This document shows positions 13,859-63,967 of a DNA stretch of 64,000 nucleotides, piece by piece. Under the pieces are notes generated by a model, which saw nothing but the letters and a program-made list of their open reading frames with translations, ran no database searches and was not told where the DNA came from. The first letter of the stretch is position 1, and each line of letters opens with the position of its first letter. The stretch is from sequence record LC597490.1. One strand, 5' to 3'. A program made the position numbers and the translations under genes.

Positions 13859-13864
13859 TATGAT

Positions 13865-25331: not shown

Positions 25332-25400
25332 TGCTCTCTGTTTTTTATTTGTATGTACATATTATAATGAGGGTAATTGTACCGCTAAAGGAGGATTAAT

Positions 25401-25769: not shown

Positions 25770-26083
25770 TGGATAATAAAGATATTCTGTATTATGTTCT
25801 TCCTAATAAAGGACCTTTTTCTTATCGTAAATATGAAGTAAAGTTACAACGACGTAGAGGATTAGAGGATGTAGGCATACCACCAGAAGTTGCTACATGG
25901 GCAGAATCACGAGGCGTAACAGATATACGTCCTCATTGGAATCCAGATAGAAACTTACAAGGTTGGCGTTGTACAACTCAATTAGATATGCATCGAATTG
26001 ATAAGTTTACGTATAACAAGTTTTGCAATAAAACGAATGAACAAGCCTTAGTTTTATTTAAGAAAGAAACCGATATTACGTAA
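25769..26083 (+). CDS. Array B paralog, C-tagged
   Basis: GIPPEVATWAE..PHW..QGWRC; ends N-EQALVL-FKKE. Confidence 0.7.
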   Translation: MDNKDILYYVLPNKGPFSYRKYEVKLQRRRGLEDVGIPPEVATWAESRGVTDIRPHWNPDRNLQGWRCTTQLDMHRIDKFTYNKFCNKTNEQALVLFKKETDIT

Positions 26084-26095
26084 GGAGTTGATAAT

Positions 26096-26401
26096 GTGAA
26101 TGTAGGAGCATCCATATATTCTTATTATGAGAATGCTTGGGGCGTACCAACTTATCGAAAATATACAGTAGTCTACACTGAATTTAAGTATGAACATGGT
26201 ATTCCACCTCACCTTGTTGATTGGCTAGAAGAAAACAAAGTTCCTTATGGTCCTCATTGGTCAATTCGTTCAGATGCTCAAGGGTGGAGAGCCTCTCCCT
26301 TTATTAGAATTGACCAAGTTACAAAAGAAGAATATGAACGGTACAAAAATAACACAAATAAGATATCCGTTTCATTCTTTAAACAAGAAGAATTATATTA
26401 G
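26096..26401 (+). CDS. Array B paralog, C-tagged
   Basis: GIPPHLVDWLE..PHW..QGWRA; ends N-KISVSF-FKQE. Confidence 0.7.
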   Translation: MNVGASIYSYYENAWGVPTYRKYTVVYTEFKYEHGIPPHLVDWLEENKVPYGPHWSIRSDAQGWRASPFIRIDQVTKEEYERYKNNTNKISVSFFKQEELY

Positions 26402-26415
26402 CAAGGAGTGATTGT

Positions 26416-26715
26416 ATGCAATTAGTAACAAAGCTACGTCCAGATGAACCAAATGATAGTGAGTATCGTGTATATACATACACAGCATCGGGTACTCATA
26501 AACTAGGTATTCCTGCTCATGTTGGTGCATGGTGCATATCAAATGGCATACGTATATCAAGTCATTGGCACGCATATGATGAATGGGAAGGTTGGGTGTG
26601 TACGCACAACTTGCTTGTCGATTTCATCACAAAAGAAGAGTATGATGAATTAACACGTAAAGGAAACAACGAAGGTGCAGTAACAGATTTAAAAACAGAA
26701 GTTTTATTTGATTAA
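26416..26715 (+). CDS. Array B paralog, C-tagged
   Basis: GIPAHVGAWC..SHW..EGWVC; ends N-EGAVTD-LKTE. Confidence 0.7.
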   Translation: MQLVTKLRPDEPNDSEYRVYTYTASGTHKLGIPAHVGAWCISNGIRISSHWHAYDEWEGWVCTHNLLVDFITKEEYDELTRKGNNEGAVTDLKTEVLFD

Positions 26716-26727
26716 AGGAGGGTCGTT

Positions 26728-27036
26728 ATGCCAACTCCAGAGTATAAAAGTGTATATGCTGAAATTTCTATTAATGGAACACAACAATACACTGAGTACA
26801 GAATATTTAAGGAGAGAAAAAGTACGGGTGGATTCCCACCTGAAATGGTTCCTATATTTGAAAAGATGGGAGTTGAAATTCTAGATCACTGGGATATAGA
26901 TTGGCATAATAAAGGGTGGCGTTCTAGTGATTACGTAACACCAGGTGAAATTAGTTATTCACATTATTTAAAAAAACGAGAAAAGCAAAACAACCATCAA
27001 GCATCTTTATTTATGAACGAAGAACCTGCTATTTAA
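26728..27036 (+). CDS. Array B paralog, C-tagged
   Basis: GFPPEM..DHW..KGWRS; ends N-HQASLF-MNEE. Confidence 0.7.
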   Translation: MPTPEYKSVYAEISINGTQQYTEYRIFKERKSTGGFPPEMVPIFEKMGVEILDHWDIDWHNKGWRSSDYVTPGEISYSHYLKKREKQNNHQASLFMNEEPAI

Positions 27037-27048
27037 AGGAGGTGTAAT

Positions 27049-27360
27049 ATGAATCACATTGGAGAAACGAATTATGCAAGAATTGTAGGCAAGGGAGGTA
27101 ACGTTCGTTATTGTAAGTATGTTATACTTGCAAAGCCAAGGGAAATTCGAAGTGGGTTTCCGCCAGAGATAGCTAGGTGGGCTGAATCCAAAGGCGTCGA
27201 GCTTACTCCTCACTGGACAGCATCACATAGAGAAGAAGGATGGATGGCTAGTCTCTATATTCATGTTGATCGTATTCGAAAGGATGAATATTTAAAAGCT
27301 GAAAGAATGCAAAATAACGAGGCAGTTTTCAAATTTAAAAGTGAAACTGAAGTATGGTAA
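27049..27360 (+). CDS. Array B paralog, C-tagged
   Basis: GFPPEIARWAE..PHW..EGWMA; ends N-NEAVFK-FKSE. Confidence 0.7.
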   Translation: MNHIGETNYARIVGKGGNVRYCKYVILAKPREIRSGFPPEIARWAESKGVELTPHWTASHREEGWMASLYIHVDRIRKDEYLKAERMQNNEAVFKFKSETEVW

Positions 27361-28523: not shown

Positions 28524-29813
28524 GTGAAGCAGGATTTATCCTTAGCGCTAGAGACGATTAATGTCTTAGCGGAAGACCCTATAACAGCGCAATTAGAATC
28601 ACAATTTTGTCATCTACACTTACACACACCATGGAGTATGCTCGATGGTTTTTGCGTAATTGATGACTTAATTAAGTTAGCGAAAGAAAGAGGTATGACT
28701 CACATTGGTATTAGTGACCACGGTAACTGTCATGGTCACATAGAATTCTATACCAAATGTAAGGCGGCAGGTATTACACCTGTATTAGGTTGTGAATTAT
28801 ATGAAGCTCCTCAAATGAAATGGAAAAAAGAAGAGTTCGATAAGATGTCTCCAAATTGGAACGGATGGCGTCCAACTATCAACCACCTACTTGTTATCGC
28901 TAAAAACAACGAAGGTTATGCGAATCTATTAGAACTATCTAGTAGGGGTTATCTAGAAGGTTTCTATCGTAAGCCTCGTGTTGACTACAATTTATTAAAA
29001 CGTTTAAGCAAAGGTTTGATCGCAACTAGTGCATGTCTTGGTGGTTCGATTCCTCAATGTATTTTACGAGGGAAAGAACGAGTAGGTAGAAACATTGCAA
29101 AATTTTATAAGAAGATTTTCGATGAGTTCTACTTCGAAATACAACCAAGTGAATTGCCAGATCAAAAGATTGTAAATGAAAAACTGATTCAATGGTCAAA
29201 AGAAATGGATATACCCCTTGTCGTTACGTCGGATGCACACATGCTTCGTAAAGAAGATAAGCCAGTCCATGCTAGTTTAACTACAATTGGACGTAATGAA
29301 GATACATCTGATATCAGTGTATATGACCATGCTTATTTCATGAGTGTAAGAGAAATGCAAGACTATGGTATTCCACAAGAAGCAATCGACAATGCACAAA
29401 AGATTGCTGAAAAATGTAATGTTATAATTGAAATGGGTAATTTACAATTCCCTGAATATGAAGTACCTGAAGGATTCGATTTCGATTCATACTTGGTTCA
29501 TTTATGTGAACAAGCATTCTTCAATATGGCATTAGAAAAAGATATTGATGTTGATTTATACTTACAACGTATGAATTATGAATTAGATGTAATCAAACAA
29601 AAGAAACTTTCAGCTTATATGATTATTGTTTGGGACTTTATTGATTACGCAAAGAGAAATAATATATTAGTAGGTCCAGGTCGTGGTTCGGCAGCTGGTT
29701 CATTGGTTGCTTACTTACTACGTATTACCAACTTAGACCCTATTAAATATGATTTACTGTTTGAACGATTCTTAAATCCTGAACGTAATGCAATGCCTGA
29801 CGTAGATACTGAT
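28524..29813 (+). CDS. dnaE: DNA polymerase III alpha, exon 1 (PHP domain to PDVDTD)
   Basis: HLHLHTPWSMLDG, SDHG, VGPGRGSAAGSLVAY, FERFLNPER.MPDVDTD. Confidence 0.95.
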
Positions 29814-30501
29814 ATGGAAATGTCCCGCCTACTAGTAATAGTAGTGTCGGAACTCTGTGGATTGCTGGAAGCAGCGTAAGCTATTATAACTAAAACGTGA
29901 CTTGAATAAGGTGAGCGTGAATGTTTAAAAATATAATAGTAGTGTTGTAATCAGCAGCCTAGCTTCGTCCGTTATGATAAGGAAGCGCTCTAAGTAGACA
30001 ATATCATACGTTGTATCCCGTGCGATATGTAATCCCGTAATTCTACATTATGTAGTTGGTCTTCCCTCCACTGCGAGCCGTCCCTGTGCGTGAACAGACC
30101 CAGTACTTTGATTAATAGAAGAAGGTTCAACGACTATCGAAAGCGTAGCTTCTATGTGAATAGGAGTGAGTAAGCGAGTAGAGTAGGGTATGTCAGAATA
30201 AAGTAGAATGGAGTCGGTCCCTATCAAGCAATTTATTGTTTCGGGAGGACGAAAAATAGCGCCCGTAAAAGCTATTTGGTCTCTTGGTCTTAAATGATAT
30301 ATTCGAAGTGCAGAGCGCCCGAATGATCTCTTTTATGCAGAATAAAGCTTGTTGAGGCTCAAATGTGTAAGAAAGAAGCAAGGGTAATGATATAGTCTAG
30401 TCCCGATTGTCTGAGTCAAACTACAAATTGATGAATAGCAGTAAGAGTGAGACCTAACAGCTACAGACATGAGAAATTTGGTGAAAGCCAGGGTGTAAAC
30501 G
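29814..30501 (+). mobile_element. Group I intron 1 in dnaE (688 nt, no ORF)
   Basis: Exon ends in U, intron ends in G. IGS gtcgg 29846-50 pairs with ctgat. P attgctggaa, Q aatcagcagc, R gttcaacgacta, S aatgatatagtc. Splicing restores PDVDTD-FDYERR. Confidence 0.9.
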
Positions 30502-31513
30502 TTTGACTACGAAAGAAGGCATGAAGTAATTGATTATGTAACACGTAAATATGGAGCAGATAAAGTATCTCAGATTGGTACATTCGGTACGTTATCAACT
30601 CGTATGGCGTTAAAAGATATTGGTCGTGGATTAGGTATTGACCATAACATCATCAATGAAATGAATAAAATGATTCCTGTACATCAAGGTAAAGTTGCTT
30701 CTATTAAAGATGCATTAGAGCAAGTACCTGAATTACAAGAATATCAAACTATGTATCCTGAGCTATTTGAATTAGCTATGAAGGTAGAAAGCTTACCTCG
30801 TACTAACTCAATTCATGCTTGTGGAATGGTTATTGCGCCGAAGTCATTATATGGTTCCATCCCATTAATTAAAGGAAAAAATGATGAAGTCGTAACGCAA
30901 TATGAAGGCCCGACATTAGAAAAACTAGGTATTATCAAGTTTGACTTCCTTGGCTTAAAGAACTTATCTGTAATTGATATTGCACGTAGGTTAGCAAAGG
31001 AACGTCATGGCGTTGATATTGACCCAGATAAATTAGAACCAGAAGACCCAAAAGTATTTAATACAATCCAGCAAGGATTCACTGACGGATTATTCCAGAT
31101 TGAGTCTGAAGGTATGAAGAAGTTGTTCCGTGGTATTAACAAGGTAGACTTCGAGACATTAATAGCTGGTGTAGCTTTATACCGTCCAGGTCCGATGGAA
31201 CATATTCCTGATTATCAGGCCAAATCAAATGGATTAAAAGAAGTGTCTTATCCTCACGCAGACCTAGAACGTATCACAAAGAACACGTTCGGTATTGCCA
31301 TCTACCAAGAACAAATCATGCAGATTACAGGACAGTTCGGTGGATATTCTCCAGGTCAACAAGATGGATTTAGAAAGGCTATTGGTAAAAAGAGCCAGGA
31401 GGTTATGGATAAGGTATTACCTGAATTACATTCAGACATTCTTGACCACAACTACTCACAAGAGATTGCAGAATACATTATCAACATCATTAAACCATTC
31501 GTTGGTTATGGGT
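30502..31513 (+). CDS. dnaE: DNA polymerase III alpha, exon 2
   Basis: FDYERRHEVIDYV..QIGTFGT, HACG, KFDFLGLKNL, LFQIES, LYRPGP, YQEQIM, FVGYG. Confidence 0.95.
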
Positions 31514-31847
31514 TAACATGTTAGGCCCCTCTAGTGAGTGATTACTAGAGCAAACTCCGAATATGCTGGGACGAACCTTAGAGCCTTTAGTACGAGCATA
31601 CGCCGTAACAATCTAAAGGATTGGTCAATCAGCAGGGATAGCCGAAAGGAAGCCCCCAGAGACTACCAAGGAGCATCTTTATCTTTCTATAATGGAGAGT
31701 TTGATCCTACTGGCTTAGGTGTTTTCACACCTCCTTGTCAATTGGTCAGATTAGCGGTTAGCTTTCGAGCTTTCCGTTATGGAAAGATGGAGATGATGGT
31801 ATAGTCCACTCCCCTAATAAATATCGGGAAATCCGAGGGTATAAAGG
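31514..31847 (+). mobile_element. Group I intron 2 in dnaE (334 nt, no ORF)
   Basis: gggU/ pairs with gccc in P1. P aatatgctggga, Q aatcagcagg, R cagagacta, S atggtatagtcc; terminal G. Splicing restores GYG-F-NRSH. Confidence 0.9.
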
Positions 31848-32722
31848 TCAACCGTTCACATGCTGCTTGCTATGCATATATTTGTTATCAAACTGCATAT
31901 TTTAAGACACACTACCCAATTGAATTTATGTGTGGATTATTAACTATTTTTGGTGAACAACAAGAGAAATGTGTTCAGTACATTGAAGAGTCTAAGCGTA
32001 TGGGCATTAACGTTCTACCTCCTGACATTAACTTCAGTGAGCGTGGATTCTCTATTGATGGCAAAGCTCTACGTTATGGTTTAGCAAGCATAAAAGGAAT
32101 GGGAGAGGCTGTAGTAGATGCAATTCTAGCGGCACGACCATTTGCTTCATTAGAAGATATGATTCAGAAAGTACCAAAACGTATCATGAACAAACGTGTT
32201 ATTAATGTTCTATGTCGTTCTGGAGCTTTAGATGGATTAGGAAATGAACATAAGAACCGATTGGCTATTCTTCAATATCTATACATGCTTCGTGGAGATA
32301 AGGATGATATTTCATATGAAGTATCTAAGTATGATAAGCAAGCTATGCTACAAGATGAAAAGCAATTGATTGGTGTATATGTAAGTTCACATCCATTAGA
32401 AGGTATATGTGAGAAATTAAACTGGGATTACATTGCCGATGGTGATGTTTTTGAAAGCGCTGGTATTATCAGAAGCTTTAAAGAAGTTCGAACGAAACGT
32501 GGTCAGTTAATGGCAATGGTTAATCTCGAAACATTAGATGGTGAGAAGAAGATAGTTGTCTTCCCAGATGTATATGAGAAACTTGATGTTCCATTGCAAG
32601 AAGGACTTATTGTTAAGTTTGCTGCTTACTTCAAGTTTAACTTCCAATACAATGAACGTTCTTGTTTAGCCAAGAAGTTTACGATTCCGAAACGGATTAA
32701 TTCACAGATACTCAAGAAATAA
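31848..32722 (+). CDS. dnaE: DNA polymerase III alpha, exon 3 (spliced product 1058 aa)
   Basis: NRSHAACY, YFKTHYPIEF, LPPDINFS, YGLASIKGMG, C-terminal OB fold; exon lengths 1290+1012+875 = 3177 nt, in frame. Confidence 0.95.
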
Positions 32723-35296: not shown

Positions 35297-35710
35297 ATGG
35301 GTGGTTTATTATATCCGTATTTATTACTCACACTAATTGTGATTGTTGTTATCTATTTGGTGTGTGGTATTCGTGGCAAGGATTGGTTGTTTAAGGCAAG
35401 TTTGTCAGGACTTATTACATCTACATTATTTTATTTGCCTATCTTTACTATCATTACTTCTCAAGCAGAGACAACATGGACTGTAGTAGAAGAAAAACCA
35501 ATCAAAATTACAAAGAAACATGAAAACGGTATTACTTATGAATTAGATGATGAAGCAAAAGAAAAGAAGAACTTCGTTTATTATCATACGACTGATAGTA
35601 AAGAAGGTAAGGTTATTATATCTCGAAAAATATTCGTAGATGATTTTATTAACAAATGGTTCGACGCACCAAGCAATAAAAAATATGATGTCTACTTACC
35701 AAAGGAGTGA
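35297..35710 (+). CDS. Membrane protein
   Basis: Two N-terminal TM segments. Confidence 0.65.
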   Translation: MGGLLYPYLLLTLIVIVVIYLVCGIRGKDWLFKASLSGLITSTLFYLPIFTIITSQAETTWTVVEEKPIKITKKHENGITYELDDEAKEKKNFVYYHTTDSKEGKVIISRKIFVDDFINKWFDAPSNKKYDVYLPKE

Positions 35711-35714
35711 GGAG

Positions 35715-35972
35715 ATGAAAACCATTGAACCAGGTTCAAGAGTTATCATAGGAAGTAAGAAAGCAAAAAAACATTATTATGATACGATTCAAGGTATGAC
35801 AGCCACAGTAGTTGGGCCAGGAATGGCAGAAGATAGATGGATTGTTAATGTGGATAGAGGTCCAAAAGCAATGACGTACAATGGATGGTCTATACATGTA
35901 GTAGATTTAATTCCCTATATAAGTAACAATGAGGAATCTATTTCTCATATGAAAGAGGAGTTAGGAATATGA
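35715..35972 (+). CDS. Array C paralog 1 (SH3/KOW-like), C-tagged
   Basis: GSRVIIGSKKA..W.V..WSIHVVDL; ends N-EESISH-MKEE. Confidence 0.7.
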   Translation: MKTIEPGSRVIIGSKKAKKHYYDTIQGMTATVVGPGMAEDRWIVNVDRGPKAMTYNGWSIHVVDLIPYISNNEESISHMKEELGI

Positions 35973-36226
35973 GAGACTACAAAGGTAAAGAAGTTATTAT
36001 TGGAGATAAACGAGCCAGCTTAAATTTCTATAAAAGTATTATTGGGAAAAAAGGTACAGTTACTGACCGTGCCACTCTAACAGGTTGGTTCGTGAATATT
36101 TCTCGTAGTGAAACTGTAGCTGTTTATGATGAATGGATTGTGCATGAAGATGACTTACTTGTTATTCCTAAAGAAAATGAAGAAACAATTTCTTCTATGA
36201 AACAAGAGGAAAATCCTTATGAGTAA
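35969..36226 (+). CDS. Array C paralog 2, C-tagged
   Basis: GKEVIIGDKRA..WIVHEDDL; ends N-EETISS-MKQE. Confidence 0.7.
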   Translation: MRDYKGKEVIIGDKRASLNFYKSIIGKKGTVTDRATLTGWFVNISRSETVAVYDEWIVHEDDLLVIPKENEETISSMKQEENPYE

Positions 36227-36449
36227 AAAACAAAAACCTAAATACTGTATTATTGGCGGAGCGAAAGCAGAGACTTATGGATACGAATATGTTGTAGGCA
36301 AGAAAGCTAGAATGTATTCAGTAGGGGATGAACATGTGCATGTGAAAGTTGAGAACCTTGGTTTCTGGTATATAGCAACAGAAGATGCTCTTTTTAATTT
36401 TAACAATAAAGAGTCTATCATTAATATGAAAAGAGAGGATGCATTGTGA
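36219..36449 (+). CDS. Array C paralog 3, C-tagged
   Basis: IIGGAKA..WYIATED; ends N-KESIIN-MKRE. Confidence 0.7.
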   Translation: MSKKQKPKYCIIGGAKAETYGYEYVVGKKARMYSVGDEHVHVKVENLGFWYIATEDALFNFNNKESIINMKREDAL

Positions 36450-36688
36450 AAAAAGGTGATATATTGGTTGTTGGTGATAAACGTGCAGCTAAATATGGAT
36501 ACTACAAAGCAGTGGGGTGTAGGGTTGTACTACACAAACGTCATACTGTATTCCATGAATTATGGGGTGTGAAATTAGAAAACAGTCGAGCACATATGTT
36601 TCCTAGTTATTTCATACATGAAGAGGACCTTCTTCCTATTCAAAATACAAGTTCTCTTATACGTTTAAAAGAGGAGGAAAATATATGA
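36446..36688 (+). CDS. Array C paralog 4, C-tagged
   Basis: GDILVVGDKRA..YFIHEEDL; ends N-TSSLIR-LKEE. Confidence 0.7.
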   Translation: MKKGDILVVGDKRAAKYGYYKAVGCRVVLHKRHTVFHELWGVKLENSRAHMFPSYFIHEEDLLPIQNTSSLIRLKEEENI

Positions 36689-36930
36689 AACGAGGAGATA
36701 GGAAGGTTGTTGGAAAGATATTCTCTAGAGATTTCAATTACACACCTTTAGAGGGTAAGGTTGTTCAAGTTTATAAACGTAATGAAACTGTTAGAGATAC
36801 TTGGTATGTACATCCAATTATGAAAAATGGATTGGTTTCTAAAAATGCATGGTATGTCCACATTAAAGACTTAATGGATATCACGAATGAAGGTACCATA
36901 AAAGTATTGAAAGGGGAGATAATGATATGA
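36685..36930 (+). CDS. Array C paralog 5, C-tagged
   Basis: GDRKVVG..WYVHIKDL; ends N-EGTIKV-LKGE. Confidence 0.7.
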   Translation: MKRGDRKVVGKIFSRDFNYTPLEGKVVQVYKRNETVRDTWYVHPIMKNGLVSKNAWYVHIKDLMDITNEGTIKVLKGEIMI

Positions 36931-37959: not shown

Positions 37960-38286
37960 ATGAGAAGAGCAATGATTGAATACAAAGGGGAAATAATAGA
38001 ACCCATTGCAATTGTATTTAGAAGAGGCATTACAAGAGAAGATAGGCATATCGCATTGGTTCATACACCAGGAGAATACTTTTGTCCTGTTACAATAGAA
38101 GCTATGTTTAGGTATGATAAAAAACAACCACATGTTTTATATGAATCTCCAAGATATATGAAAATATTATCACAGGATTTAGATGAAAATTATAGTTGGG
38201 TTCGTATCAACAAAGAAGATATCATAACAAGTAATGAATCTAATCAGAATGCTTCTTTATACATGAGAAAAGAGGAGGCACTATAA
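37960..38286 (+). CDS. Array D paralog 1, C-tagged
   Basis: EPIAIVFRR..IALVH; ends N-QNASLY-MRKE. Confidence 0.7.
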   Translation: MRRAMIEYKGEIIEPIAIVFRRGITREDRHIALVHTPGEYFCPVTIEAMFRYDKKQPHVLYESPRYMKILSQDLDENYSWVRINKEDIITSNESNQNASLYMRKEEAL

Positions 38287-38663
38287 TGAAGAAAGCATTT
38301 GCTCTAATTCCAGGTTTACTTCCAGAAGAAGAATTATTTGACGATGTAAATTGTGCATATGAAGACTACAACAATCCAATCACTGTAGAAGTATTTGCTA
38401 TTGTCTCTCGTGATGATGAAAGATTGATTGCATTACATAGACATGAAGAAGCAGATTACTGGCCCATGAGCCTTGAACAACTTGCAGCCACAGATAGTGA
38501 AGGTATGGTTGAAATCTTTATATCTAGTCATTTTCATCAAATTAGTGAACCAGACTTTAAAGAAAACTATGTATGGTCTACGATTGTACATGATAATTAC
38601 AAAATAAGAGATGCATCGAATCAAGACAATTTAGCTAGTATGAAAGGGGAGATTATGATATGA
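38286..38663 (+). CDS. Array D paralog 2, C-tagged
   Basis: VEVFAIVSR..IALH; ends N-QDNLAS-MKGE. Confidence 0.7.
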   Translation: MKKAFALIPGLLPEEELFDDVNCAYEDYNNPITVEVFAIVSRDDERLIALHRHEEADYWPMSLEQLAATDSEGMVEIFISSHFHQISEPDFKENYVWSTIVHDNYKIRDASNQDNLASMKGEIMI

Positions 38664-38989
38664 GAAAAGCCTATGCAACAATAGAAAAACGGGGAAGAGA
38701 CCCTAAGGAAGTGGAAATAGTTGCGCTTATGATACGTAGAGATGGAAGAACAATCGCATTGTATCATGAAGCAAACACAGCTTTTCATCCCAAAAGCGTA
38801 GAAGCTATACAAGAAAAGGATACGCCTAACTATAAAATGCTTTTTCTTTCAGAAAAGTATTACCAAATTACTAAAGAGGATTTACGTGTTCATTATAGGT
38901 GGGATGATGTCTTGAATGAGAATTATAGAATTGAAGCGAACACGAATCGGGATGCTTCTAAGTCACTGAAAGGAGAAGAAGTCATATGA
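38660..38989 (+). CDS. Array D paralog 3, C-tagged
   Basis: VEIVALMIR..IALYH; ends N-RDASKS-LKGE. Confidence 0.7.
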   Translation: MRKAYATIEKRGRDPKEVEIVALMIRRDGRTIALYHEANTAFHPKSVEAIQEKDTPNYKMLFLSEKYYQITKEDLRVHYRWDDVLNENYRIEANTNRDASKSLKGEEVI

Positions 38990-39312
38990 GAAAGGCATTT
39001 GCAAAAGTAAAACTTAACGGTAAAGTTGTACATTCAGAAGCAATTGTTATTCTTACCCGTAAAAGTGGTAGAGTCATTGCATTATGTTATGATAAAGGCT
39101 CTGAATTCTATCCACTTTCTGTTCAAGGTATGTTGGCTGATGACAATGGAGAAGTAAAAATCCATTTTAAATCTCCAAAGTATGATAAGTTAGACCACAA
39201 TAGTTTTCGAAGAGACTATATATGGCGTGAAATTATTGATTGCGAATATGCAATCGAAGAAGAGAACAATGGTTTAGCTGTTCGTGCAATGAAAGGTGAA
39301 GAAGTAATATGA
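38986..39312 (+). CDS. Array D paralog 4, C-tagged
   Basis: SEAIVILTR..IALCY; ends N-GLAVRA-MKGE. Confidence 0.7.
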   Translation: MRKAFAKVKLNGKVVHSEAIVILTRKSGRVIALCYDKGSEFYPLSVQGMLADDNGEVKIHFKSPKYDKLDHNSFRRDYIWREIIDCEYAIEEENNGLAVRAMKGEEVI

Positions 39313-39632
39313 AAGCATTTGCCCAACCATTAACACGTAACTCTGAAGTAGAAGTTCTAGCTGTTATAAAAAGAAAAGAGGATGATATAGAGTATGTGTT
39401 ACATAGACATAATAGCTTTCATCCTCATCACCCAAGAAGTGTAGAAGAAATAGCAGACAACAAAAGAAATACCGTAGAAGTCGTATTCGTATCAGAAGAA
39501 TACAAAAAGATTTCTCGTGATGAAATTAGAAGGAAATATACATGGACTCAAATACAACCAGGTTCATGTCGTTATGTTCAGCAAACGAATGCCTGGTCTG
39601 TTTTGGACATGAAACCAGAGGTGACAATATGA
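39309..39632 (+). CDS. Array D paralog 5, C-tagged
   Basis: VEVLAVIKR; ends N-AWSVLD-MKPE. Confidence 0.7.
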   Translation: MKAFAQPLTRNSEVEVLAVIKRKEDDIEYVLHRHNSFHPHHPRSVEEIADNKRNTVEVVFVSEEYKKISRDEIRRKYTWTQIQPGSCRYVQQTNAWSVLDMKPEVTI

Positions 39633-39961
39633 AACAAATACGTATTAATAATCATAAATATGATGTATATGCTATTGTGTCACAAGGGAAAAAGATGATT
39701 GAAGAAAATATGATGATGGCTATTTTAATACACAAAGATGGCGCAGACCTTTCTCCTATGACACCATTTGAAATAGCTGCTTATTACAAAGGAGAAATAC
39801 TTTATATTGACTCTGAACTAAAGAGAAGAAGATTGGATAAGCACGGCACTCGATTTAACCGTGAAGACTTCATGTGGATTACTCGCACATTGAAACTATC
39901 TGATATCGAACCAACTAACAACAACTTTATGTCTTCTTTAAAGAGTGAACCTGTATTATGA
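39629..39961 (+). CDS. Array D paralog 6, C-tagged
   Basis: ATG 39629; YDVYAIV; ends N-NNFMSS-LKSE. Confidence 0.7.
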   Translation: MKQIRINNHKYDVYAIVSQGKKMIEENMMMAILIHKDGADLSPMTPFEIAAYYKGEILYIDSELKRRRLDKHGTRFNREDFMWITRTLKLSDIEPTNNNFMSSLKSEPVL

Positions 39962-40254
39962 GAACAGTTTATCTCTCATCACATCGTAAAGAGTTTAAAG
40001 TATATGCGATTATAGAAGAAGAACACACTACAGATTTCTTAATTAAAGAAGAGTATCAAAGCGACAACAATCCATATCATCTAGCAGAATTTTTTGATGC
40101 GGAAGTCACTTATGTAGATAAGGAATTTCATAAATATGAAGGAACAAAAGACGCATGTTATGGTTTCGTATGGATAGAAGAAGACCACCATTGGCATTAC
40201 ACAGGTAGAAATTCCGATACAGTATATGCTTTTAAAAAGGAGGATGTAATATGA
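39958..40254 (+). CDS. Array D paralog 7, C-tagged
   Basis: FKVYAIIEE..NPYH..F..YVDK; ends N-SDTVYA-FKKE. Confidence 0.7.
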   Translation: MRTVYLSSHRKEFKVYAIIEEEHTTDFLIKEEYQSDNNPYHLAEFFDAEVTYVDKEFHKYEGTKDACYGFVWIEEDHHWHYTGRNSDTVYAFKKEDVI

Positions 40255-40556
40255 GGAAGGTACGTATTCACTATACAAATGAAGTAATTGAGGCTTATGC
40301 CATCGTAGAAGAATCCAATCAGTTGAACTTTCTTATTCGAGCATTCCCATCAGAATATAGTACACCTATGAATCCTTATCATATGGAACAGTTCTTTGGT
40401 GGACATATTCATTATGTAGATAAATCACTTGAAAAATATAAAGATACTGAACATGCTTGTGATGGTTATAAATGGATAATCATGGAGACGGAATGGGATT
40501 ACTTCGATAATAATGAAAATACAGTAGCAACATTAAAAGAAGAAATAGCATATTAA
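40251..40556 (+). CDS. Array D paralog 8, C-tagged
   Basis: IEAYAIVEE..NPYH..FF..YVDK; ends N-ENTVAT-LKEE. Confidence 0.7.
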   Translation: MRKVRIHYTNEVIEAYAIVEESNQLNFLIRAFPSEYSTPMNPYHMEQFFGGHIHYVDKSLEKYKDTEHACDGYKWIIMETEWDYFDNNENTVATLKEEIAY

Positions 40557-41521: not shown

Positions 41522-41550
41522 ATTGTATATCGTTTTTTCTTGTATTACAA
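41522..41550 (-). promoter_or_regulatory. SigA-type promoter on minus strand
   Basis: TTGTAA-17 nt-TACAAT read on reverse complement. Confidence 0.6.
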
Positions 41551-41579
41551 TACCTTTTGAGAAGGGAGTGAAAATAAAT

Positions 41580-41966
41580 ATGGTAAAACTTTTATCACCT
41601 GTAGGTACAGAAGTTGAAGTAGTATGTGTCATATCAGAAGTACATAAGGTACGAGAAAATGTACCTATACGGGACAGAGGAGTGATGGTACGAAGAGAAA
41701 TAGAAAGGGAGTATAAGATATTTAAAGCTCTTGTAAAAGGGTATGGAGGCGGTTGTCACCCAGCTCTATTGAAAGGTGATTTTAAAATCGAATACACATC
41801 CGATAATTTTGATTCACTATCCTTAATACACATCAAGAATAACTATGAGTGGATGAATTTTCGTACAACAAATCCATTAAAGTTTATAAGAAAGAATAAT
41901 AATAGCATTAAGGATTGGAAGCAAGAAGACGAAAGAATGTGGAAGGAGGACTGGATGTATGATTAA
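41580..41966 (+). CDS. Array E (D-like) paralog, C-tagged
   Basis: ATG 41580; VEVVCVI; N-NNSIKD-WKQE. Confidence 0.65.
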   Translation: MVKLLSPVGTEVEVVCVISEVHKVRENVPIRDRGVMVRREIEREYKIFKALVKGYGGGCHPALLKGDFKIEYTSDNFDSLSLIHIKNNYEWMNFRTTNPLKFIRKNNNSIKDWKQEDERMWKEDWMYD

Positions 41967-42288
41967 AGTACGAGACAGGGATAGACATGGTAGACCAATT
42001 ACCAGAGAGGTGTATGGCGTTGCTCGTATAAAAGGATGGGATACCCAAGGATGGGTGTATCATATTCTAATGCCATACGATAAAGATTATTTAACAGGTG
42101 GTGTTCCTGTAGTTAAATCACTTGGTTTTGAACTTATTTATTTAGATGACAGTATCTCAAGAACATCCAAAGAATTGGAAGGTCTTATTTGGAATCACTA
42201 TGGATCGGATAATCCAATTGATAAACAAATTATAATAACAAATAAATCATCTTTAATGAAGTTTAAATCAGAGGATAATTTAGAATGA
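41959..42288 (+). CDS. Array E paralog, C-tagged
   Basis: REVYGVA..NPID; ends N-KSSLMK-FKSE. Confidence 0.7.
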   Translation: MIKVRDRDRHGRPITREVYGVARIKGWDTQGWVYHILMPYDKDYLTGGVPVVKSLGFELIYLDDSISRTSKELEGLIWNHYGSDNPIDKQIIITNKSSLMKFKSEDNLE

Positions 42289-42301
42289 AAGGAGAGATGA
42301 A

Positions 42302-42625
42302 ATGATAAGAATTGAAAATTCAAAAGGTAGTGTATTCGAAGTGTATGGTGTAATAAAAACAAATGGTGTCGTGCCAGCTTATGCAACTTTACAAAAGAAA
42401 CGAACCAAGAAAAACGTTGGAGCAGCTTCTTCTTTTGAAAGAGTATTAGGATTAGGTGATACGATTCTATATAAGGATGAATCTATGGTTCCAAATGAAG
42501 AAGGTTATTATGATGGCTTCATGTGGACTTATTTTTCTGCAACACATAATCCAATGGATAGGGTTGTACTAGATACTAATATTGCAACGACACGCTTTAT
42601 GAAACAAGACATAGCTTGCGATTAG
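42302..42625 (+). CDS. Array E paralog, C-tagged
   Basis: FEVYGVI..LYKD..NPMD; ends N-IATTRF-MKQD. Confidence 0.7.
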   Translation: MIRIENSKGSVFEVYGVIKTNGVVPAYATLQKKRTKKNVGAASSFERVLGLGDTILYKDESMVPNEEGYYDGFMWTYFSATHNPMDRVVLDTNIATTRFMKQDIACD

Positions 42626-42635
42626 AGGTGAGAAT

Positions 42636-42935
42636 ATGAAAAGAATAAGAAGCCCTAAAAACAAATTAGTATATGATACTTACGGCGTCATATTAACTCC
42701 ACACGATATCTATATGATTTTAATAGAAGATGATGATGGCGGCGCAGTTTCATTTCAAGAAGCAGAAAGATTAAATGCAACCGTTCTTTATAAAGATGAC
42801 TTCTTGGAGTCACGTCCAGACCATATAGAAAGAAACTATAGATGGAAAGGATTTGGCGAAAAGAACCCACTTGATTATGTAATTGAAAACAATGGATTAG
42901 GTGTTTCTTCTATGAAAAAAGAGTCTCCTTTGTAG
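42636..42935 (+). CDS. Array E paralog, C-tagged
   Basis: YDTYGVI..LYKD..NPLD; ends N-GLGVSS-MKKE. Confidence 0.7.
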   Translation: MKRIRSPKNKLVYDTYGVILTPHDIYMILIEDDDGGAVSFQEAERLNATVLYKDDFLESRPDHIERNYRWKGFGEKNPLDYVIENNGLGVSSMKKESPL

Positions 42936-48970: not shown

Positions 48971-49660
48971 ATGACAGTATGGGCGATACTATTTATTCTA
49001 TCATTCTTCCTTTCTATGTATTTAATGATTGGCGGTTTATCCAAAGATCAAAAAGTAGCTGATGCAAAGAAGAAACTTCGTCGAGCTGAAGAAGCTCATA
49101 AGAAAGAAATTGAAGAATTAAAAGCACAACATGCAAAACAAATCAAAGACCGTGATGACATTACTATTGAAGTAGTGGACAAAGCTGCTGATAAAATCCG
49201 TAGTTTGGGAGCTATTATCGACAAGCGAGATGGAAAAGGAACTGCTCGTGAAATTGTAACAGAACGTACTCATTACAATGAACAACGTACAGACATTTCA
49301 TATAGAGTATTGTATGACCATCTTGCAAAGCAATTAGATAAGAAGCCAGAACAACCAAAGCCAGTTCAAATGAAGAAACACGTAACACCATTTGGTGGTT
49401 GGAGTGGAGGAAGCGGTGGTTCTTCATCGTCTTCGTCATCATCAAGTTCTAGCCCTAGACGTTCTGGAAGTAGTTCATCTTCTCGTTCTTCTAGCTCAAG
49501 CGATTACTCAAGTAGTTATGATTATGGTTCTTCATATAGTTCGTATGATAGCGGTAGTAGCTCTTCTTATAGCTCAGGTGGTAGCTGTGGTTCTAGCTCA
49601 AGCTCTTATTCAGATTCAAGTTCTAGCTCAGATTCAGGTGGTTACGGTGGCTGTGATTGA
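48971..49660 (+). CDS. Membrane-anchored coiled-coil protein with Ser/Gly/Tyr-rich tail
   Basis: N-terminal TM; about 85 aa poly-Ser tail. Confidence 0.75.
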   Translation: MTVWAILFILSFFLSMYLMIGGLSKDQKVADAKKKLRRAEEAHKKEIEELKAQHAKQIKDRDDITIEVVDKAADKIRSLGAIIDKRDGKGTAREIVTERTHYNEQRTDISYRVLYDHLAKQLDKKPEQPKPVQMKKHVTPFGGWSGGSGGSSSSSSSSSSSPRRSGSSSSSRSSSSSDYSSSYDYGSSYSSYDSGSSSSYSSGGSCGSSSSSYSDSSSSSDSGGYGGCD

Positions 49661-49937
49661 TAGGGGGTATCTTACCCCCTCCCAGCTTTACGGGCATCCA
49701 AGAGACACTATCACAATGCGTGAATATGCAGATAACATCCAACCTGTAATAGTGGATTATCAATACGAACCATATGATAGGATTCTAACTGAAGAGATGA
49801 AAAAATATATGGAGCAACTTGAAAAACAACTGTATAAGAGTATTATGGATAGTTATGATGATTCTTTGAAGAACATCATTAAACCTTCTAACGAGAAGAC
49901 AGTTAAACGTATGAAACAGGAGGATGAGGTTTCATGA
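49653..49937 (+). CDS. Array F ORF 1, C-tagged (start uncertain: GTG 49653 or ATG 49716)
   Basis: Ends N-EKTVKR-MKQE. Confidence 0.5.
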   Translation: MIDRGYLTPSQLYGHPRDTITMREYADNIQPVIVDYQYEPYDRILTEEMKKYMEQLEKQLYKSIMDSYDDSLKNIIKPSNEKTVKRMKQEDEVS

Positions 49938-50455
49938 CGACATTTAGAGGTGCCGATGTAATTGCTACATTTAATGACCAAGTTATTGGAAGATTAAATC
50001 CTATTAGCTATTCCGTTAGTAGAGAAAGTGCTCCTAGATATTACATGGGAACTCCAGGACACAATAGTTTCTCTAGAGGATTTACTTCAGAAGTTACATT
50101 ATCAAATGTAATAGCTGATGAGTCACAAGAGCAAACTAGAAGAAACTTAATCGAACATTTAGATTTAAGTGATGATTTTACATTTTCTCAATTATCTAAT
50201 GCAGTACGTTTGTCATATGGTTATGCTAGAGGAATGGGTAGAGGATTTCCTGGGAACTTTAGACTTCAGGTAGATGAAGTTGATTACTCTATGTTGTATC
50301 CTGCTACTTTCAGTGTGATTAAGGTTAGAGCATTGGATTTTAAGAAGTTTATTCGTCCGATTGAAATGGATGAAAGTAAGTTTACCTATGTGAATCCAAA
50401 TAACTCTTTTAGAAGTTGGAAACTGAATCGAGAGGAGGAAGTTTACTATGACTAA
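49934..50455 (+). CDS. Array F ORF 2: tail-tube-like N-terminus, C-tagged
   Basis: TFRGADVIATFNDQVIGRLNPISYSVSRESAPRYYMG..SFSRG matches recalled FSGADIVATF..VIGEL..ITYSV.REKAP.Y.MG..SFSRG; ends N-SFRSWK-LNRE. Confidence 0.6.
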   Translation: MTTFRGADVIATFNDQVIGRLNPISYSVSRESAPRYYMGTPGHNSFSRGFTSEVTLSNVIADESQEQTRRNLIEHLDLSDDFTFSQLSNAVRLSYGYARGMGRGFPGNFRLQVDEVDYSMLYPATFSVIKVRALDFKKFIRPIEMDESKFTYVNPNNSFRSWKLNREEEVYYD

Positions 50456-50759
50456 TGAGTATGCGAAACTATCCGCCCAGAGAATTACTGAAGAAGCAGT
50501 TCGATTAATGAAAGAAGCTTGTTCTCCATACGTTGGGCAGCCAGTTAATCAAACTAAACAAAGTGTAGCAGATGCTATGGCTCGTCATTTGCAAAAGTTC
50601 TTTTCAGATGATTGGAAAATAGAAGTTGCTGAAGATGGTATGGGTACATTTACATACTTAAAACCAGTAACAGTAACAACAGCAACACTTGATATGCGTC
50701 ATGTTTTAAACAACAATTTCTTTCTAGATAAAATGAAAGAAGAAACTGCATATGATTAA
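50448..50759 (+). CDS. Array F ORF 3: tail-sheath C-terminal-like fragment, C-tagged
   Basis: LSAQRITEEAVRLMKEACSPYVGQPVN resembles recalled sheath LS..RI..EAV......PFIGEPN; ends N-NFFLDK-MKEE. Confidence 0.5.
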   Translation: MTNEYAKLSAQRITEEAVRLMKEACSPYVGQPVNQTKQSVADAMARHLQKFFSDDWKIEVAEDGMGTFTYLKPVTVTTATLDMRHVLNNNFFLDKMKEETAYD

Positions 50760-51057
50760 TTACTCAAATACAATTAAACAAGAGCTACAAACGATATCTG
50801 CTACATTTGAAAGTGAAGGAGATAGAGAATCAACTGTTCAAGAAATGAATGGGATTATTCAAAATAGATTATCTATGATGACATTGGGTACCACTATACA
50901 TGAAATAAAATGTGAACAAGGTAATGATGGCAAGTTTCATCTCAAGATAAAATTTGCACCTCCCCCTTTAGACAAAATTTATGTAAACATGAATCTAACA
51001 CCCAATAGGAATCAATTTAATATCCATTCGTGGAACAAAGAAGCCTCTTACGATTAA
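50752..51057 (+). CDS. Array F ORF 4: possible sheath extreme C-terminal fragment, C-tagged
   Basis: L.MM..G..I...HLKIKFAP..LDKIYVNMNL; ends N-QFNIHS-WNKE. Confidence 0.45.
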   Translation: MINYSNTIKQELQTISATFESEGDRESTVQEMNGIIQNRLSMMTLGTTIHEIKCEQGNDGKFHLKIKFAPPPLDKIYVNMNLTPNRNQFNIHSWNKEASYD

Positions 51058-51091
51058 GTAAGGGGCTTTTTTTATGAAAGGAGGTGAGTCA

Positions 51092-51217
51092 ATGACGTGC
51101 TCTCAATGTGATGGTAAAGGTGCAGTTCCTATAGACATGACTATACATACTAGTGTATATAAAGTATGTGGGAAATGTGATGGTACTGGAAAGGAGGAGA
51201 GGGATGGCAATTGCTAA
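51092..51217 (+). CDS. 41 aa DnaJ-type zinc finger (not in ORF track)
   Basis: CSQCDGKG...CGKCDGTG; SD aggaggtg. Confidence 0.7.
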   Translation: MTCSQCDGKGAVPIDMTIHTSVYKVCGKCDGTGKEERDGNC

Positions 51218-51710
51218 AGAGATAGAAACTGGAATGGTTTTGGGGAAATTTATCGACGAAAGAGGTTTGGTCTATTACAAGCGTGATCCAAAAACAAGGA
51301 AACTTGTAACAGATGAGAATGGTGAATATATACAAATTACAGAGTCGCATTACTATCTAGTGTATTTACATTCACGTCGTGAACGAACAACAGGTATTTA
51401 TATACCAGCAAAGCTTTCGCCATATTTGCGTAAGTTAAACATCAAGTTTACTAGTAAGTCGAATCATCATACGTATGGTCCTGTTGATTATGCGGTTGGC
51501 TGTAGGTTAAGAAGAGTTACAAAAGATGAGTATGACAGAACAAGTATTCATCGTTCTGCTAAAGCTTATTATGACAAAGTAAAAAATGGTGAGGTTCAAA
51601 TCAAGCTGACAACAGAAGAACAAAGTCCTTACTTTGAGCCTATCAGAAGTAAAACATTGGCGTTGTGCGGAGTAAAAGAAGATGAAAATTTATCCTCTTA
51701 TTACTCTTAA
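51204..51710 (+). CDS. Hypothetical protein
   Basis: SD aggagg before ATG 51204. Confidence 0.65.
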   Translation: MAIAKEIETGMVLGKFIDERGLVYYKRDPKTRKLVTDENGEYIQITESHYYLVYLHSRRERTTGIYIPAKLSPYLRKLNIKFTSKSNHHTYGPVDYAVGCRLRRVTKDEYDRTSIHRSAKAYYDKVKNGEVQIKLTTEEQSPYFEPIRSKTLALCGVKEDENLSSYYS

Positions 51711-53845: not shown

Positions 53846-54556
53846 ATGGAAGAAGTTAAGAAACTTATTCAAGATGCAAAAAAGATCACATTCTTAACTG
53901 GTGCTGGTATGAGTACAGCAAGTGGTATTCCAGACTTTCGTTCCAGTAAAGGATTAAAAGGAAAGCATATTCCATTTGAAAAACTATTAAGCTTACCTTA
54001 CTTTAAAAGTAACAGAGCAGAATTTTGGGATAACCTATATGAAATCCTACACCTAGATACATTACATATGAAAGAACCAAACATAGGTCATAAATGGATT
54101 GCTGACTTACAAAAAGATAAAAAGATTTGGGTTGTCACTCAGAACATTGATGCGCTTCATCAAAAAGCTGGAAGCGAAAATGTAATTGAGGTACATGGTA
54201 ACCTAGTAGGTGGTCATTGTACAAAGTGTAAAGAAATTCATTCAATTGATTATTCATTAGGAGCACTACCAAATTGTCCGAAAGATGATTTACTATTAAA
54301 ACCAAACATTGTTCTCTATGGTGAAGACGTATATGGTATGCATGATGGTATTACTCATGCTGTAACATCAGATGTTGTGATTGTTATGGGAACAAGCCTT
54401 CAAGTATTTCCGTTTAACTCCTTAGTAGATAATGCAGCAATGAGTCCGACAACAAAAACTATCTTAGTTAATGAATCAGAAACTGAGAAAGATAGACTAT
54501 TTGACTATAAGTTAAATATGAATATCGTTGACTTTGTAAAGGAAGTGACAAGGTAA
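53846..54556 (+). CDS. Sir2-family NAD-dependent deacylase
   Basis: TGAGMSTASGIPDFRS, TQNIDALH, EVHG, CxxC, KPNIVLYGE, GTSLQV. Confidence 0.9.
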   Translation: MEEVKKLIQDAKKITFLTGAGMSTASGIPDFRSSKGLKGKHIPFEKLLSLPYFKSNRAEFWDNLYEILHLDTLHMKEPNIGHKWIADLQKDKKIWVVTQNIDALHQKAGSENVIEVHGNLVGGHCTKCKEIHSIDYSLGALPNCPKDDLLLKPNIVLYGEDVYGMHDGITHAVTSDVVIVMGTSLQVFPFNSLVDNAAMSPTTKTILVNESETEKDRLFDYKLNMNIVDFVKEVTR

Positions 54557-63196: not shown

Positions 63197-63967
63197 ATGA
63201 AACACAAAGCATTGTTGGCTTCGATTGGCGTTAGTATCGCCCTAATCGGGACTGGTAGTTATTATGGTTATGGGGAATATCAAAAACTGGAGGACAAGAA
63301 TAAAGAACTCCAACAACATATTATTAAAAAAGATAAGACGATTAAAGAAAAGAATAGCTCTATCCAAGAGAAGGATAAGACTATCGAAGAAAAGGACAAT
63401 AACATCCAAACTCTTCATAGTGAAAAAGGTGTTCTTGAAAATGAAGTAAATGAAAAGAATGGCACAATCGAGGACCTTAAAAAAAAACTAGCTGAACAAG
63501 AGCGCCAGAGGCAGGAAGCTCAACAGTTAGCAGCTAAGAAACAAGAAGAACTAAAGAACTTAGCAAATCAAAAAGCTACTCAAAAACAACAGGCTCCTGC
63601 TCCAAAGCAAATGGCAGCTCCAGCACCTTCAGCAGAGAAGAAAGAATCTCCATCAGGTAAAAGTGTTACAGTTCAAGCTACAGCTTACACAGCTGATCCT
63701 AGTGAAAATGGTGGCACATATGGAGGTCGAGTCCTTACTAAAATGGGACATGATTTAACAGCTAATCCAAACATGAAAATGATTGCCGTTGACCCGAATG
63801 TAATTCCACTTGGTTCAAAGGTATACGTTGAAGGTTATGGAGAAGCAATTGCTGGTGATACTGGCGGTGCTATTAAAGGGAACCGCATTGATGTTCTAGT
63901 TGGCTCTGATTCAGAAGCAAACAACTGGGGACGTAAAAACAATGTGGAAGTTAAAATTTTAGATTAG
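63197..63967 (+). CDS. Secreted coiled-coil plus 3D-domain (YocH-like) cell-wall protein
   Basis: Signal anchor; ATAYTA, IAVDPNVIPLGSKVYVEGYG.AIAGDTGGAIKGNRIDV. Confidence 0.9.
   Translation: MKHKALLASIGVSIALIGTGSYYGYGEYQKLEDKNKELQQHIIKKDKTIKEKNSSIQEKDKTIEEKDNNIQTLHSEKGVLENEVNEKNGTIEDLKKKLAEQERQRQEAQQLAAKKQEELKNLANQKATQKQQAPAPKQMAAPAPSAEKKESPSGKSVTVQATAYTADPSENGGTYGGRVLTKMGHDLTANPNMKMIAVDPNVIPLGSKVYVEGYGEAIAGDTGGAIKGNRIDVLVGSDSEANNWGRKNNVEVKILD

Follow-up and report, generated by a model that had tools for sequence, protein, structure and literature searches.

Small tagged proteins carrying tail-protein modules, encoded far from the structural genes of Bacillus phage vB_BceM_WH1, as candidate mimics of unassembled tail subunits

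In phage tails, contacts between subunits are made by the C-terminal domain of the sheath and the N-terminal hairpin of the tube. The sheath inner domain has stand-alone relatives (IraD, as well as the gp25/GpW-type baseplate proteins, which share its fold), and paralogues of the tube are frequent. Capsid, portal, tube or fibre proteins set off many bacterial immune systems, and how phages hide these triggers is largely open. Sensing by host defences is established for tail tube, tail fibre and capsid proteins (PMC11364771, PMC11087589, PMC11263360). For instance, DSR2 is triggered by tail tube protein, and the phage protein DSAD1 blocks this sensor (PMC11087589, PMC11263360), while the Tai/Ati systems pair small mobile-element proteins that act on intermediates of tail assembly with cognate protective proteins (PMC11364771). 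Here, we analyzed a stretch of 64,000 nucleotides (the window) from the right end (record positions 165830–229829) of Bacillus phage vB_BceM_WH1 (LC597490.1, 229,829 bp, host Bacillus cereus; hereafter WH1), with a focus on the overlapping genes gp276–gp279. Of these, gp277, gp278 and gp279, annotated in the record as hypothetical proteins, join pieces resembling tail proteins to a short C-terminal motif (the tag). Window bases 49300–51300 are 100% identical to WH1; its closest relative is Bacillus phage Edson (82% nucleotide identity), with no other close one among 50,697 phage records, and the same neighbourhood is found on a 229-kb Logan contig (L010/L012) whose sheath domain is 74% identical to that of WH1.

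The homology of the cluster proteins to tail proteins, the modularity of the tag, selection on the genes, the synteny of the locus and the restriction of the tag to one lineage are direct observations. Judging from sequence comparisons, we regard gp277–gp279 as exapted, presumably separately expressed copies of conserved modules from the phage’s own tail proteins; that they act as soluble mimics of unassembled subunits is the reading which we tentatively favour. A decoy or mimic role is plausible but unproven.

Tail-protein modules in gp277, gp278 and gp279

The genuine sheath and capsid genes and the putative tube gene lie about 100 kb from the cluster, on the opposite strand, in a structural module that occupies 35–135 kb of the record. 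The sheath protein is gp102 (526 amino acids, aa), in which the Pfam domain Phage_sheath_1C (PF17482) covers residues 428–522 with 20.2 bits against a gathering cut-off of 26.9. Three paralogous tube-type proteins of 190–246 aa (gp101, gp100 and gp099; L003 9338–11343) are encoded directly after it, and the capsid protein is gp110, of the HK97 type (PF25209, E 1.3e-20). The family to which gp101 belongs (PHROG 9206) bears the label ‘major head protein’, apparently a wrong name inherited from the RefSeq record of phage 0305phi8-36. As the true capsid is gp110, and gp101 (191 aa) directly follows the sheath gene and has a homologue annotated as ‘tail tube protein’ in phage KLEB27-3, we accept gp101 as a putative tube-type protein on the grounds of its position, its size and that annotation. 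No relatives with solved structures were found for the sheath or for gp101 by sequence or profile searches of the PDB. A second sheath-like protein was noticed as well, gp104 (483 aa; L003 13640–15091), with weak matches to the N-terminal region of Gp18 domain III and to a hidden Markov model (HMM) of the sheath C-terminal domain (E 0.0035). The initial annotation had placed the tail-like fragments outside any structural module and among metabolic genes, which is borne out by the distance and opposite strand of these structural genes; with gp101 and gp102 sitting in the structural module, the fragments are not the genome’s genuine structural genes.

The clearest piece is the N-terminus of gp277, whose residues 2–49 share 60% identity with residues 11–58 of gp101 (tblastn E 4e-14; Smith-Waterman z 23.8, 200 shuffles). 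The similarity ends abruptly at residue 49 and none of the family core motif is kept beyond, in agreement with the initial annotation, where the first ~50 aa had been read as tube-like and the remainder as divergent. A lower score was obtained with gp100 (34% identity, z 8.3), and no other structural protein scored beyond these two. The protein also matches PHROG 9206 (E 4.6e-8) and keeps 15 of the 18 positions that are conserved at ≥ 80% in the first 58 residues of 33 family members, so its module is apparently still under parental constraints. A profile built from gp277 and two orthologues retrieved 77 proteins at E ≤ 1e-3 among 1.84 billion representative proteins; except for the orthologue, these match the N-terminal part only, most ending near residue 50 and none past residue 83, and residues 84–173 have no match but orthologues in this search. 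Comparisons of residues 50–173 with the sheath domain, gp278, gp279 and the head proteins were not significant either, and the C-terminal part was accordingly rejected as a piece of the sheath or of the head-morphogenesis protein gp112. Residues 118–173 are the best-conserved part of the protein in the orthologue alignment; they weakly resemble the C-terminal half of a 107-aa gene product of L010 (E 6e-4), have no other homologue, and end in a degenerate tag, SWKLNREEEVYYD, with no variation among four genomes. The single-sequence AlphaFold2 model of gp277 was uninformative (predicted local distance difference test, pLDDT, 30), and word-index protein searches returned orthologues only.

Both following genes resemble the sheath. 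Residues 2–32 of gp278 align with residues 428–458 of gp102 (42% identity in WH1, 58% in a Logan orthologue; E 1.6e-6, z 11), and the match starts at the residue at which PF17482 starts in gp102. When profiles were compared using 87 relatives of the sheath C-terminal part, the gp278 family could be aligned along 91 columns to the final 100 residues of the sheath (hhalign Prob 97.5%, E 2.9e-11); gp278 also ranked second among 349 open reading frames (ORFs) of WH1 by the sheath-domain HMM (E 6.7e-9) and matched the PHROG tail sheath (E 0.0022). In the gp279 family, residues 12–85 align with sheath residues 447–525 (hhalign Prob 81.6%, E 1.1e-5; Prob 28.5%, E 6e-4 under another column setting), and the sheath C-terminal-domain HMM places gp279 at rank 5 of the 349 ORFs (E 0.21, not significant). 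The alignment stops exactly at the last residues of the sheath, and the 16 residues that follow are the tag. Against Pfam PF17482, neither protein gave a match at E values up to 1, the parent gp102 itself being below the cut-off. Significant similarity to the phage’s own tube and sheath, which the initial annotation had named as the check to be made, was hence found for both. We interpret gp278 as a predicted complete, stand-alone sheath C-terminal domain and gp279 as probably a second, more diverged copy. The two frames had previously been taken for consecutive parts of this domain; their sheath origin stands (for gp279 as probable), but they are predicted to be tandem copies of the whole domain and not consecutive halves. 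The impression of consecutive parts arises because the recognisable pairwise similarity is limited to helix 1 in gp278 and to helix 2 plus the last strand in gp279. Neither is part of a full-length sheath subunit beside the tube gene, as they are 103 and 101 aa long and lie 100 kb from gp102.

An AlphaFold2 model of gp278 computed from 48 aligned sequences shows the order helix-helix-strand-strand-strand (pLDDT 62, predicted template modelling score 0.53), with residues 83–103, i.e., the last strand and the tag, at pLDDT < 50. Foldseek searches with this model gave no significant match in the PDB and, the protein’s own entry aside, weak matches only in BFVD (E ≥ 0.02), to gp25/GpW/IraD-like and DUF7355 proteins. 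No gp278 relatives were found in a scan of IMG/VR.

WH1, Edson and two Logan assemblies all have the four genes intact, with unchanged sizes and arrangement, and the locus is syntenic in five genomes when the more distant L010 is included. Ratios of nonsynonymous to synonymous substitution rates (dN/dS, Nei-Gojobori) are 0.13–0.30 for gp276, 0.16–0.31 for gp277, 0.17–0.19 for gp278 and 0.08–0.26 for gp279, compared to 0.06–0.21 for the neighbouring thioredoxin-like gene. Between WH1 and Edson, 188 of the 191 residues of the tube-type protein and 508 of the 526 sheath residues are identical, while identity is 62% for gp277, 83% for gp278 and 61% for gp279; these three thus evolve far faster than the tube and sheath, at a rate typical of host-interacting accessory genes. 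An intrinsic terminator at the end of gp279 (free energy −22.6 kcal/mol, z −6.3) is present in five of the five genomes, and in L010 the stem bases differ but still pair, so the cluster seems to close a transcription unit. Taken at the sequence level, gp277–gp279 are best regarded as functional genes kept by selection, neither debris nor true structural genes.

At the cluster locus, L010 carries four tagged genes of 100, 97, 107 and 99 aa. The 97-aa gene consists of the N-terminal module of its own tube protein (z 24.9) and a tag-like end, and the 99-aa gene, a gp278 orthologue (hhalign 97.4%), derives from its own sheath. The 107-aa gene holds a segment of its own gp112-type head-morphogenesis protein (z 8.3; hhalign 86%, E 5.2e-6), a protein with a coiled-coil region that is encoded between the portal and capsid genes. 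In the 100-aa gene, a stretch of 17–20 residues resembles the capsid protein (z 5.4, E 6.7e-4), which after correction for 85 comparisons is only suggestive of a derivation from it. Taken together, the contents of L010 and of the WH1 clade indicate that this locus keeps tagged pieces of virion proteins and that the pieces differ between lineages. Other metagenomic phages also join the tube N-terminal module to unrelated sequence, one such fusion being located among nuclease, nucleotidase and dCMP-deaminase genes. In 0305phi8-36 and KLEB27-3, two related phages, the tail is of the same kind and no genes like gp277–gp279 are present. Separately, a family in unrelated metagenomic phages (L011 149–1346; P0099, P0119, P0147 and P0155) shows an N-terminal extension (MELV/MELI) followed by the tube N-terminal module and a basic C-terminus ending in ..GGRxHW or ..GGRNKW; in L011, the next two genes start with similar residues (LELV, MELV).

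The C-terminal tag and the surrounding genes

The tag is about 16 residues long and common to about 45 small proteins of the WH1 lineage. Thirty-eight small WH1 ORFs, all on the + strand and located at 150–217 kb of the record, align on a hydrophobic-K-x-E/D anchor; counted from the hydrophobic residue (M/L/F, position 0), the consensus has N/T/S at −8, N at −7 (34/38), often E at −6, T/S/A at −4, V/L/I at −3, K at +1 and E/D at +3, followed by 3–5 residues to the end. For membership, N at −7, a hydrophobic residue at 0, K/R at +1, E/D at +3 and then 2–6 residues to the C-terminus were required. In the scan with K/R required, 40 of the 41 matches lie at 150–230 kb of the record. Without a forced lysine, the pattern was found in 49 ORFs (5.5 expected), of which 36 have K and 5 have R at +1, compared to K in 8% of the internal matches. 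The tag is canonical in gp276 and gp278. In gp279 it is canonical in the Edson and Logan orthologues and degenerate in WH1 (N at +1, K at +2), gp277 has a spaced variant, and the tag HMM scores neither of the latter two WH1 proteins; the earlier statement that each of the three tail-like proteins is fused to the tag consequently holds in full for gp278, and in a weakened form for gp277 and WH1 gp279.

The tagged proteins form at least five groups that align in the tag alone (BLAST, hhalign). Tandem arrays in the window (Table 1) hold genes for 76–147 aa from at least five unrelated families, nearly all tag-ended, and a larger parent protein was recognised for 5 of the about 45 tagged WH1 proteins (gp277–gp279, gp146 and gp151). 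The suggestion that all tagged families are diverged sheath domains was rejected, as only gp278 and gp279 align with the sheath. The tag is limited to the WH1/Edson/L010 lineage: none was found in the 100 kb scanned of 0305phi8-36 (164 ORFs) or on the small ORFs of the 40 kb scanned of KLEB27-3. In roughly half of the cases, the tag lies over the Shine-Dalgarno sequence of the next gene, which overlaps the tagged one; in the rest, a spacer with a site of its own or a terminator comes after the tag. Since half of the tags do not lie over a downstream ribosome-binding site, the tag is best explained as a modular motif at the protein level and not as a by-product. Three other explanations were discarded, namely a ribosome-binding-site artefact as the whole explanation (N at −7 is outside any site, and the codons at the hydrophobic position are unrelated), read-through of the sheath-tube spacer (no resemblance, by eye only) and an amphipathic helix (helical hydrophobic moment below that of shuffles, z −4.5). 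Putative partners of the tag encoded by the phage include a ClpP homologue outside the head module (gp034; L001 17770–18348, PF00574 E 4.6e-23), an AAA ATPase inside the tag-rich region (end of gp183, window 64–666) and a ubiquitin-like/E1 cassette.

This cassette (gp211–gp216, window 12959–18988) is built around gp211, which is annotated as ‘virion structural protein’ and consists of five near-identical 57-aa tandem units. The unit is a prokaryotic ubiquitin-like domain (PF14454 E 3.4e-27; TIGR03738 PRTRC_C E 1e-20) ending in ..GTKG, and a PRTRC_A/JAB-like protein (gp215, E 3e-8) and a PRTRC-type ThiF E1 (gp216, E 2e-29) are encoded nearby. A poly-ubiquitin-like PRTRC cassette is unusual in a lytic phage; the ubiquitin-like/ThiF cassette is also present in Edson and KLEB27-3. 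Two tagged proteins from outside the window, gp146 and gp151 (record 152834–153082 and 154213–154470; L004 2834–3082 and 4213–4470), are single gp211-related units without the GTKG end, each followed by about 30 residues ending in the tag. Close to the cassette, gp217 (19017–19490) is a NADAR protein (PF08719 E 1e-52), and close to the gp276–gp279 cluster, gp285 (53846–54556) is a SIR2-family deacylase by annotation and by PF02146 on its orthologues; both are NAD/ADP-ribose-related accessory genes.

Table 1 Features of the gp276–gp279 cluster and location of the tagged-gene arrays in the window
Feature	Position in window	Strand	Description
gp276	49647..49937	+	96 aa, tagged, first gene of the overlapping four-gene cluster; orthologue alignment, canonical tag
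gp277	49934..50455	+	173-aa chimera of a tube-type N-terminal module, an orphan middle and a conserved C-terminal region with degenerate tag
gp277 tube-type module	49934..50080	+	Residues 1–49, copy of the gp101 N-terminal module (gp101 residues 10–58)
gp277 conserved C-terminal region	50285..50452	+	Residues 118–173, degenerate tag end SWKLNREEEVYYD
gp278	50448..50759	+	103 aa; sheath C-terminal domain, residues 1–87 (50448–50708), and canonical tag, residues 88–103 (50709–50756)
gp279	50752..51057	+	101 aa; probable sheath C-terminal domain, residues 12–85 (50785–51006), and 16-residue tag extension (51007–51054)
Intrinsic terminator	51040..51074	+	12-bp stem, 6-nt loop and U run; overlaps the last gp279 codons
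Tagged-gene arrays	2403–4414, 23965–27360, 35640–36930, 37960–40556, 41523–42935		

Adjacent reading frames from gp276 to gp279 overlap by 4, 8 and 8 bases, and the genes around them code for ribonucleotide reductase, a thioredoxin-like protein, a metallophosphatase, SSB, RecA and a SIR2-like protein. A 181-aa ORF at 49392–49937 was discarded as an artefact that overlaps the Ser-rich gp275 out of frame, the real start of gp276 being at 49647. Read by eye, gp275 (which with this ORF takes up 48971–49937) combines a hydrophobic segment at the N-terminus with a charged stretch, possibly a coiled coil, and a long tail rich in Ser, and its Pfam matches are solely sub-threshold ones to coiled-coil and membrane proteins. 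Directly after the cluster terminator, gp280 (51092–51217) codes for 41 aa with two CxxCxGxG motifs of the DnaJ/anti-TRAP zinc-finger type (PF00684 E 1.5e-4), and its amino acids are identical in WH1, Edson and one Logan relative (dN = 0). Elsewhere in the window, DNA polymerase III alpha is annotated as three ORFs (28524–29879, 30604–31524 and 31928–32722) separated by gaps of ~0.7 and ~0.4 kb, for which none of the Rfam intron families reached threshold; Rfam and tRNA scans of the window found nothing. The gene gp300 (63197–63967) is annotated as ‘enterotoxin’, and the similarly worded ORF062 of 0305phi8-36 is described as cell-wall/peptidoglycan-binding (annotation wording only).

Possible roles of the cluster

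With debris, a ribosome-binding-site artefact and genuine structural genes excluded, exaptation of virion-protein modules remains. In the mechanism that we put forward, the overlapping frames would be translated from one unit among nucleotide-metabolism and recombination genes, and gp277–gp279, as soluble stand-ins, would occupy whatever recognises unassembled tail subunits, most plausibly host immune sensors triggered by virion proteins, while the common C-terminal motif would dock all tagged proteins on one shared partner. That the retained modules are polymerisation interfaces is something we infer from what is generally known of tube and sheath proteins; which partner they have, when the genes are expressed and what the tag does are likewise inferred. 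The location of the cluster, its evolutionary rate and the recurrence of virion-derived pieces at one locus fit soluble mimics. A wider version would turn the whole set of ~45 small proteins into a ‘bait plus common tag’ counter-defence, in which one docking motif and a dedicated locus of virion-derived baits serve to soak up or redirect host factors. We consider this wider version doubtful. The decoy idea of the initial annotation gains from the virion-derived pieces, the modular tag, the selection on the genes and the repetition of the pattern in L010 and in the two tagged ubiquitin-like units, but its mechanism is without direct support. Nothing that was computed supports three more of its elements, namely a host defence sensor as the partner, an involvement of DSR2-type systems and the delivery of anything to an effector by the tag.

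Several points weigh against soluble mimicry. No sensor, partner or effector was identified from sequence, gp276–gp279 match none of the PADLOC, NCBIfam and Pfam models for defence or named families, and the fold search with the gp278 model gave no significant match to a named protein. Only a part of the cluster can be traced to the virion: gp276 has no detectable parent in WH1, neither do the C-terminal two thirds of gp277, and the homology of gp279 to the sheath is only probable. The promoter scan was uninformative on expression time (it also missed the terminator that was seen by folding). Moreover, a mimic with a recognised surface could trigger an abortive-infection sensor instead of blocking it, and we know of no defence that senses the sheath.

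Control of the phage’s own tail assembly, the main rival, is unlikely in our judgement, though it accounts for much of the same evidence. The sheath and tube pieces would bind unassembled subunits via the parental interfaces and cap them or hold them against premature or aberrant polymerisation, with the tag connecting them to turnover or to a chaperone. What gp277–gp279 retain are the best-conserved stretches of their parents, which are probably contact surfaces, the gp278 model has weak matches to gp25/GpW-type baseplate proteins, the translational coupling of gp277–gp279 by 8-base overlaps suggests a fixed stoichiometry, and the phage has unusually many tube- and sheath-type paralogues (gp099–gp101, gp104). 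On the other hand, the cluster sits among nucleotide-metabolism genes on the opposite strand, 100 kb away from the structural genes, it changes much faster than its nearly invariant presumed partners, 0305phi8-36 and KLEB27-3 make the same kind of tail without it, and the head-protein-derived members in L010 do not suit a tail-specific role.

It is also rather improbable that the function is unrelated to tails, in which case the tagged proteins would be one lineage-specific host-takeover family whose N-terminal parts could be any small stable fold acquired by recombination, with sheath, tube and ubiquitin-like pieces as three scaffolds among many. Such a family would explain why just 5 of the about 45 tagged WH1 proteins have a larger parent and why most tagged families are orphans in tandem arrays, and it is in line with gp277, which retains a quarter of its parent and is best conserved in its orphan C-terminal region. 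Against this, different genes are found at the one locus in the WH1 clade and in L010, yet virion-derived ones occur in each, which suggests that the origin of the pieces matters, and the tube module retains the conserved positions of its parent.

The hydrophobic-K-x-E/D core of the tag has the form of the eukaryotic SUMO acceptor consensus. The tag could accordingly be a lysine acceptor or pseudo-substrate for ubiquitin-like conjugation, which would make the tagged proteins substrates of the phage’s PRTRC-type cassette or decoys for host Bil-type systems; we regard this as quite improbable. In its favour are the enrichment of K at +1 (36/49 tags vs. 8% in internal matches), the five-unit ubiquitin-like protein, ThiF-type E1 and JAB-like protein encoded by the phage, and the two tagged single ubiquitin-like units gp146 and gp151; furthermore, in Bil systems it is the central tail fibre that receives a ubiquitin-like protein (10.1101/2023.09.04.556158; PMC11601603). 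However, R, N, Q or M takes the place of K in several members (including WH1 gp279 and the tube-derived gene of L010), KLEB27-3 has a ubiquitin-like/ThiF cassette and no tags in the surrounding 40 kb, no E2 was detected, and the likeness to the SUMO motif spans only four residues.

Finally, it is scarcely credible that the cluster is non-functional, decaying debris of a duplicated sheath-tube junction with a ‘tag’ generated by the ribosome-binding site of the next gene: about half of the tags do overlap a downstream Shine-Dalgarno sequence and the terminal Y-D comes from the ATGAnTAA overlap, but dN/dS is well below 1 with frames intact in five genomes, the other half of the tags precede a spacer with its own ribosome-binding site or a terminator, the conserved N at −7 is outside any such site, the codons at the hydrophobic position are unrelated, the order (tube piece followed by two sheath pieces) differs from the parental junction, and the sheath-tube spacer is, by eye, unlike the tag.

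If gp277–gp279 are indeed mimics, they would represent a simple and general counter-measure and also ready probes for finding tail-protein sensors; if the ‘bait plus common tag’ version is true, an array of structural-protein mimics would be a new kind of counter-defence. As assembly regulators, they would show how a very long contractile tail avoids premature polymerisation. Either way, the shared motif marks a family of ~45 members that is now open to study as one system.

Comparison with known systems

The nearest relatives of the cluster are structural families. In gp278 (and probably in gp279), homology to the final 100 residues of the phage’s own sheath and of 87 related ones, the Phage_sheath_1C (PF17482) region, extends along the entire domain, and gp278 has a predicted topology of two helices and a three-stranded sheet. 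In contrast to sheath proteins, gp278 and gp279 are ~100 aa long, lack the rest of the sheath, are encoded outside the structural module, carry the tag and evolve fast. With the stand-alone gp25/GpW/IraD-like domains the likeness consists in the weak structural matches of the gp278 model. The tube family of 0305phi8-36-like myophages (PHROG 9206) shares its N-terminal module with residues 1–49 of gp277, but gp277 lacks the core motif and the entire C-terminal two thirds of the family and is not encoded beside the sheath gene.

Among systems compared by their action, DSAD1 would be similar as a small phage protein occupying the tail-protein site of a sensor, a comparison by mode of action alone. 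Tai differs in having the central tail fibre of siphophages as its target and in residing on prophages and satellites, and no sequence relation to Tai/Ati is expected. The arrangement of ~45 arrayed, lineage-specific and fast-evolving genes, paralogous or unrelated, is also reminiscent of the small accessory multigene families of large viruses; to our knowledge, however, a common C-terminal motif on unrelated N-terminal domains, some of them virion-derived, is not known from such families.

A literature search returned no paper on WH1, the paper on 0305phi8-36 had no relevant content, and the combination of a tube module on an orphan body, two free sheath domains, a common motif and a conserved locus of virion pieces is not known to us and did not turn up in the literature searched. 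Among described systems, gp277–gp279 would belong with exapted virion-protein domains or protein mimics, and the tag family as a whole may be new.

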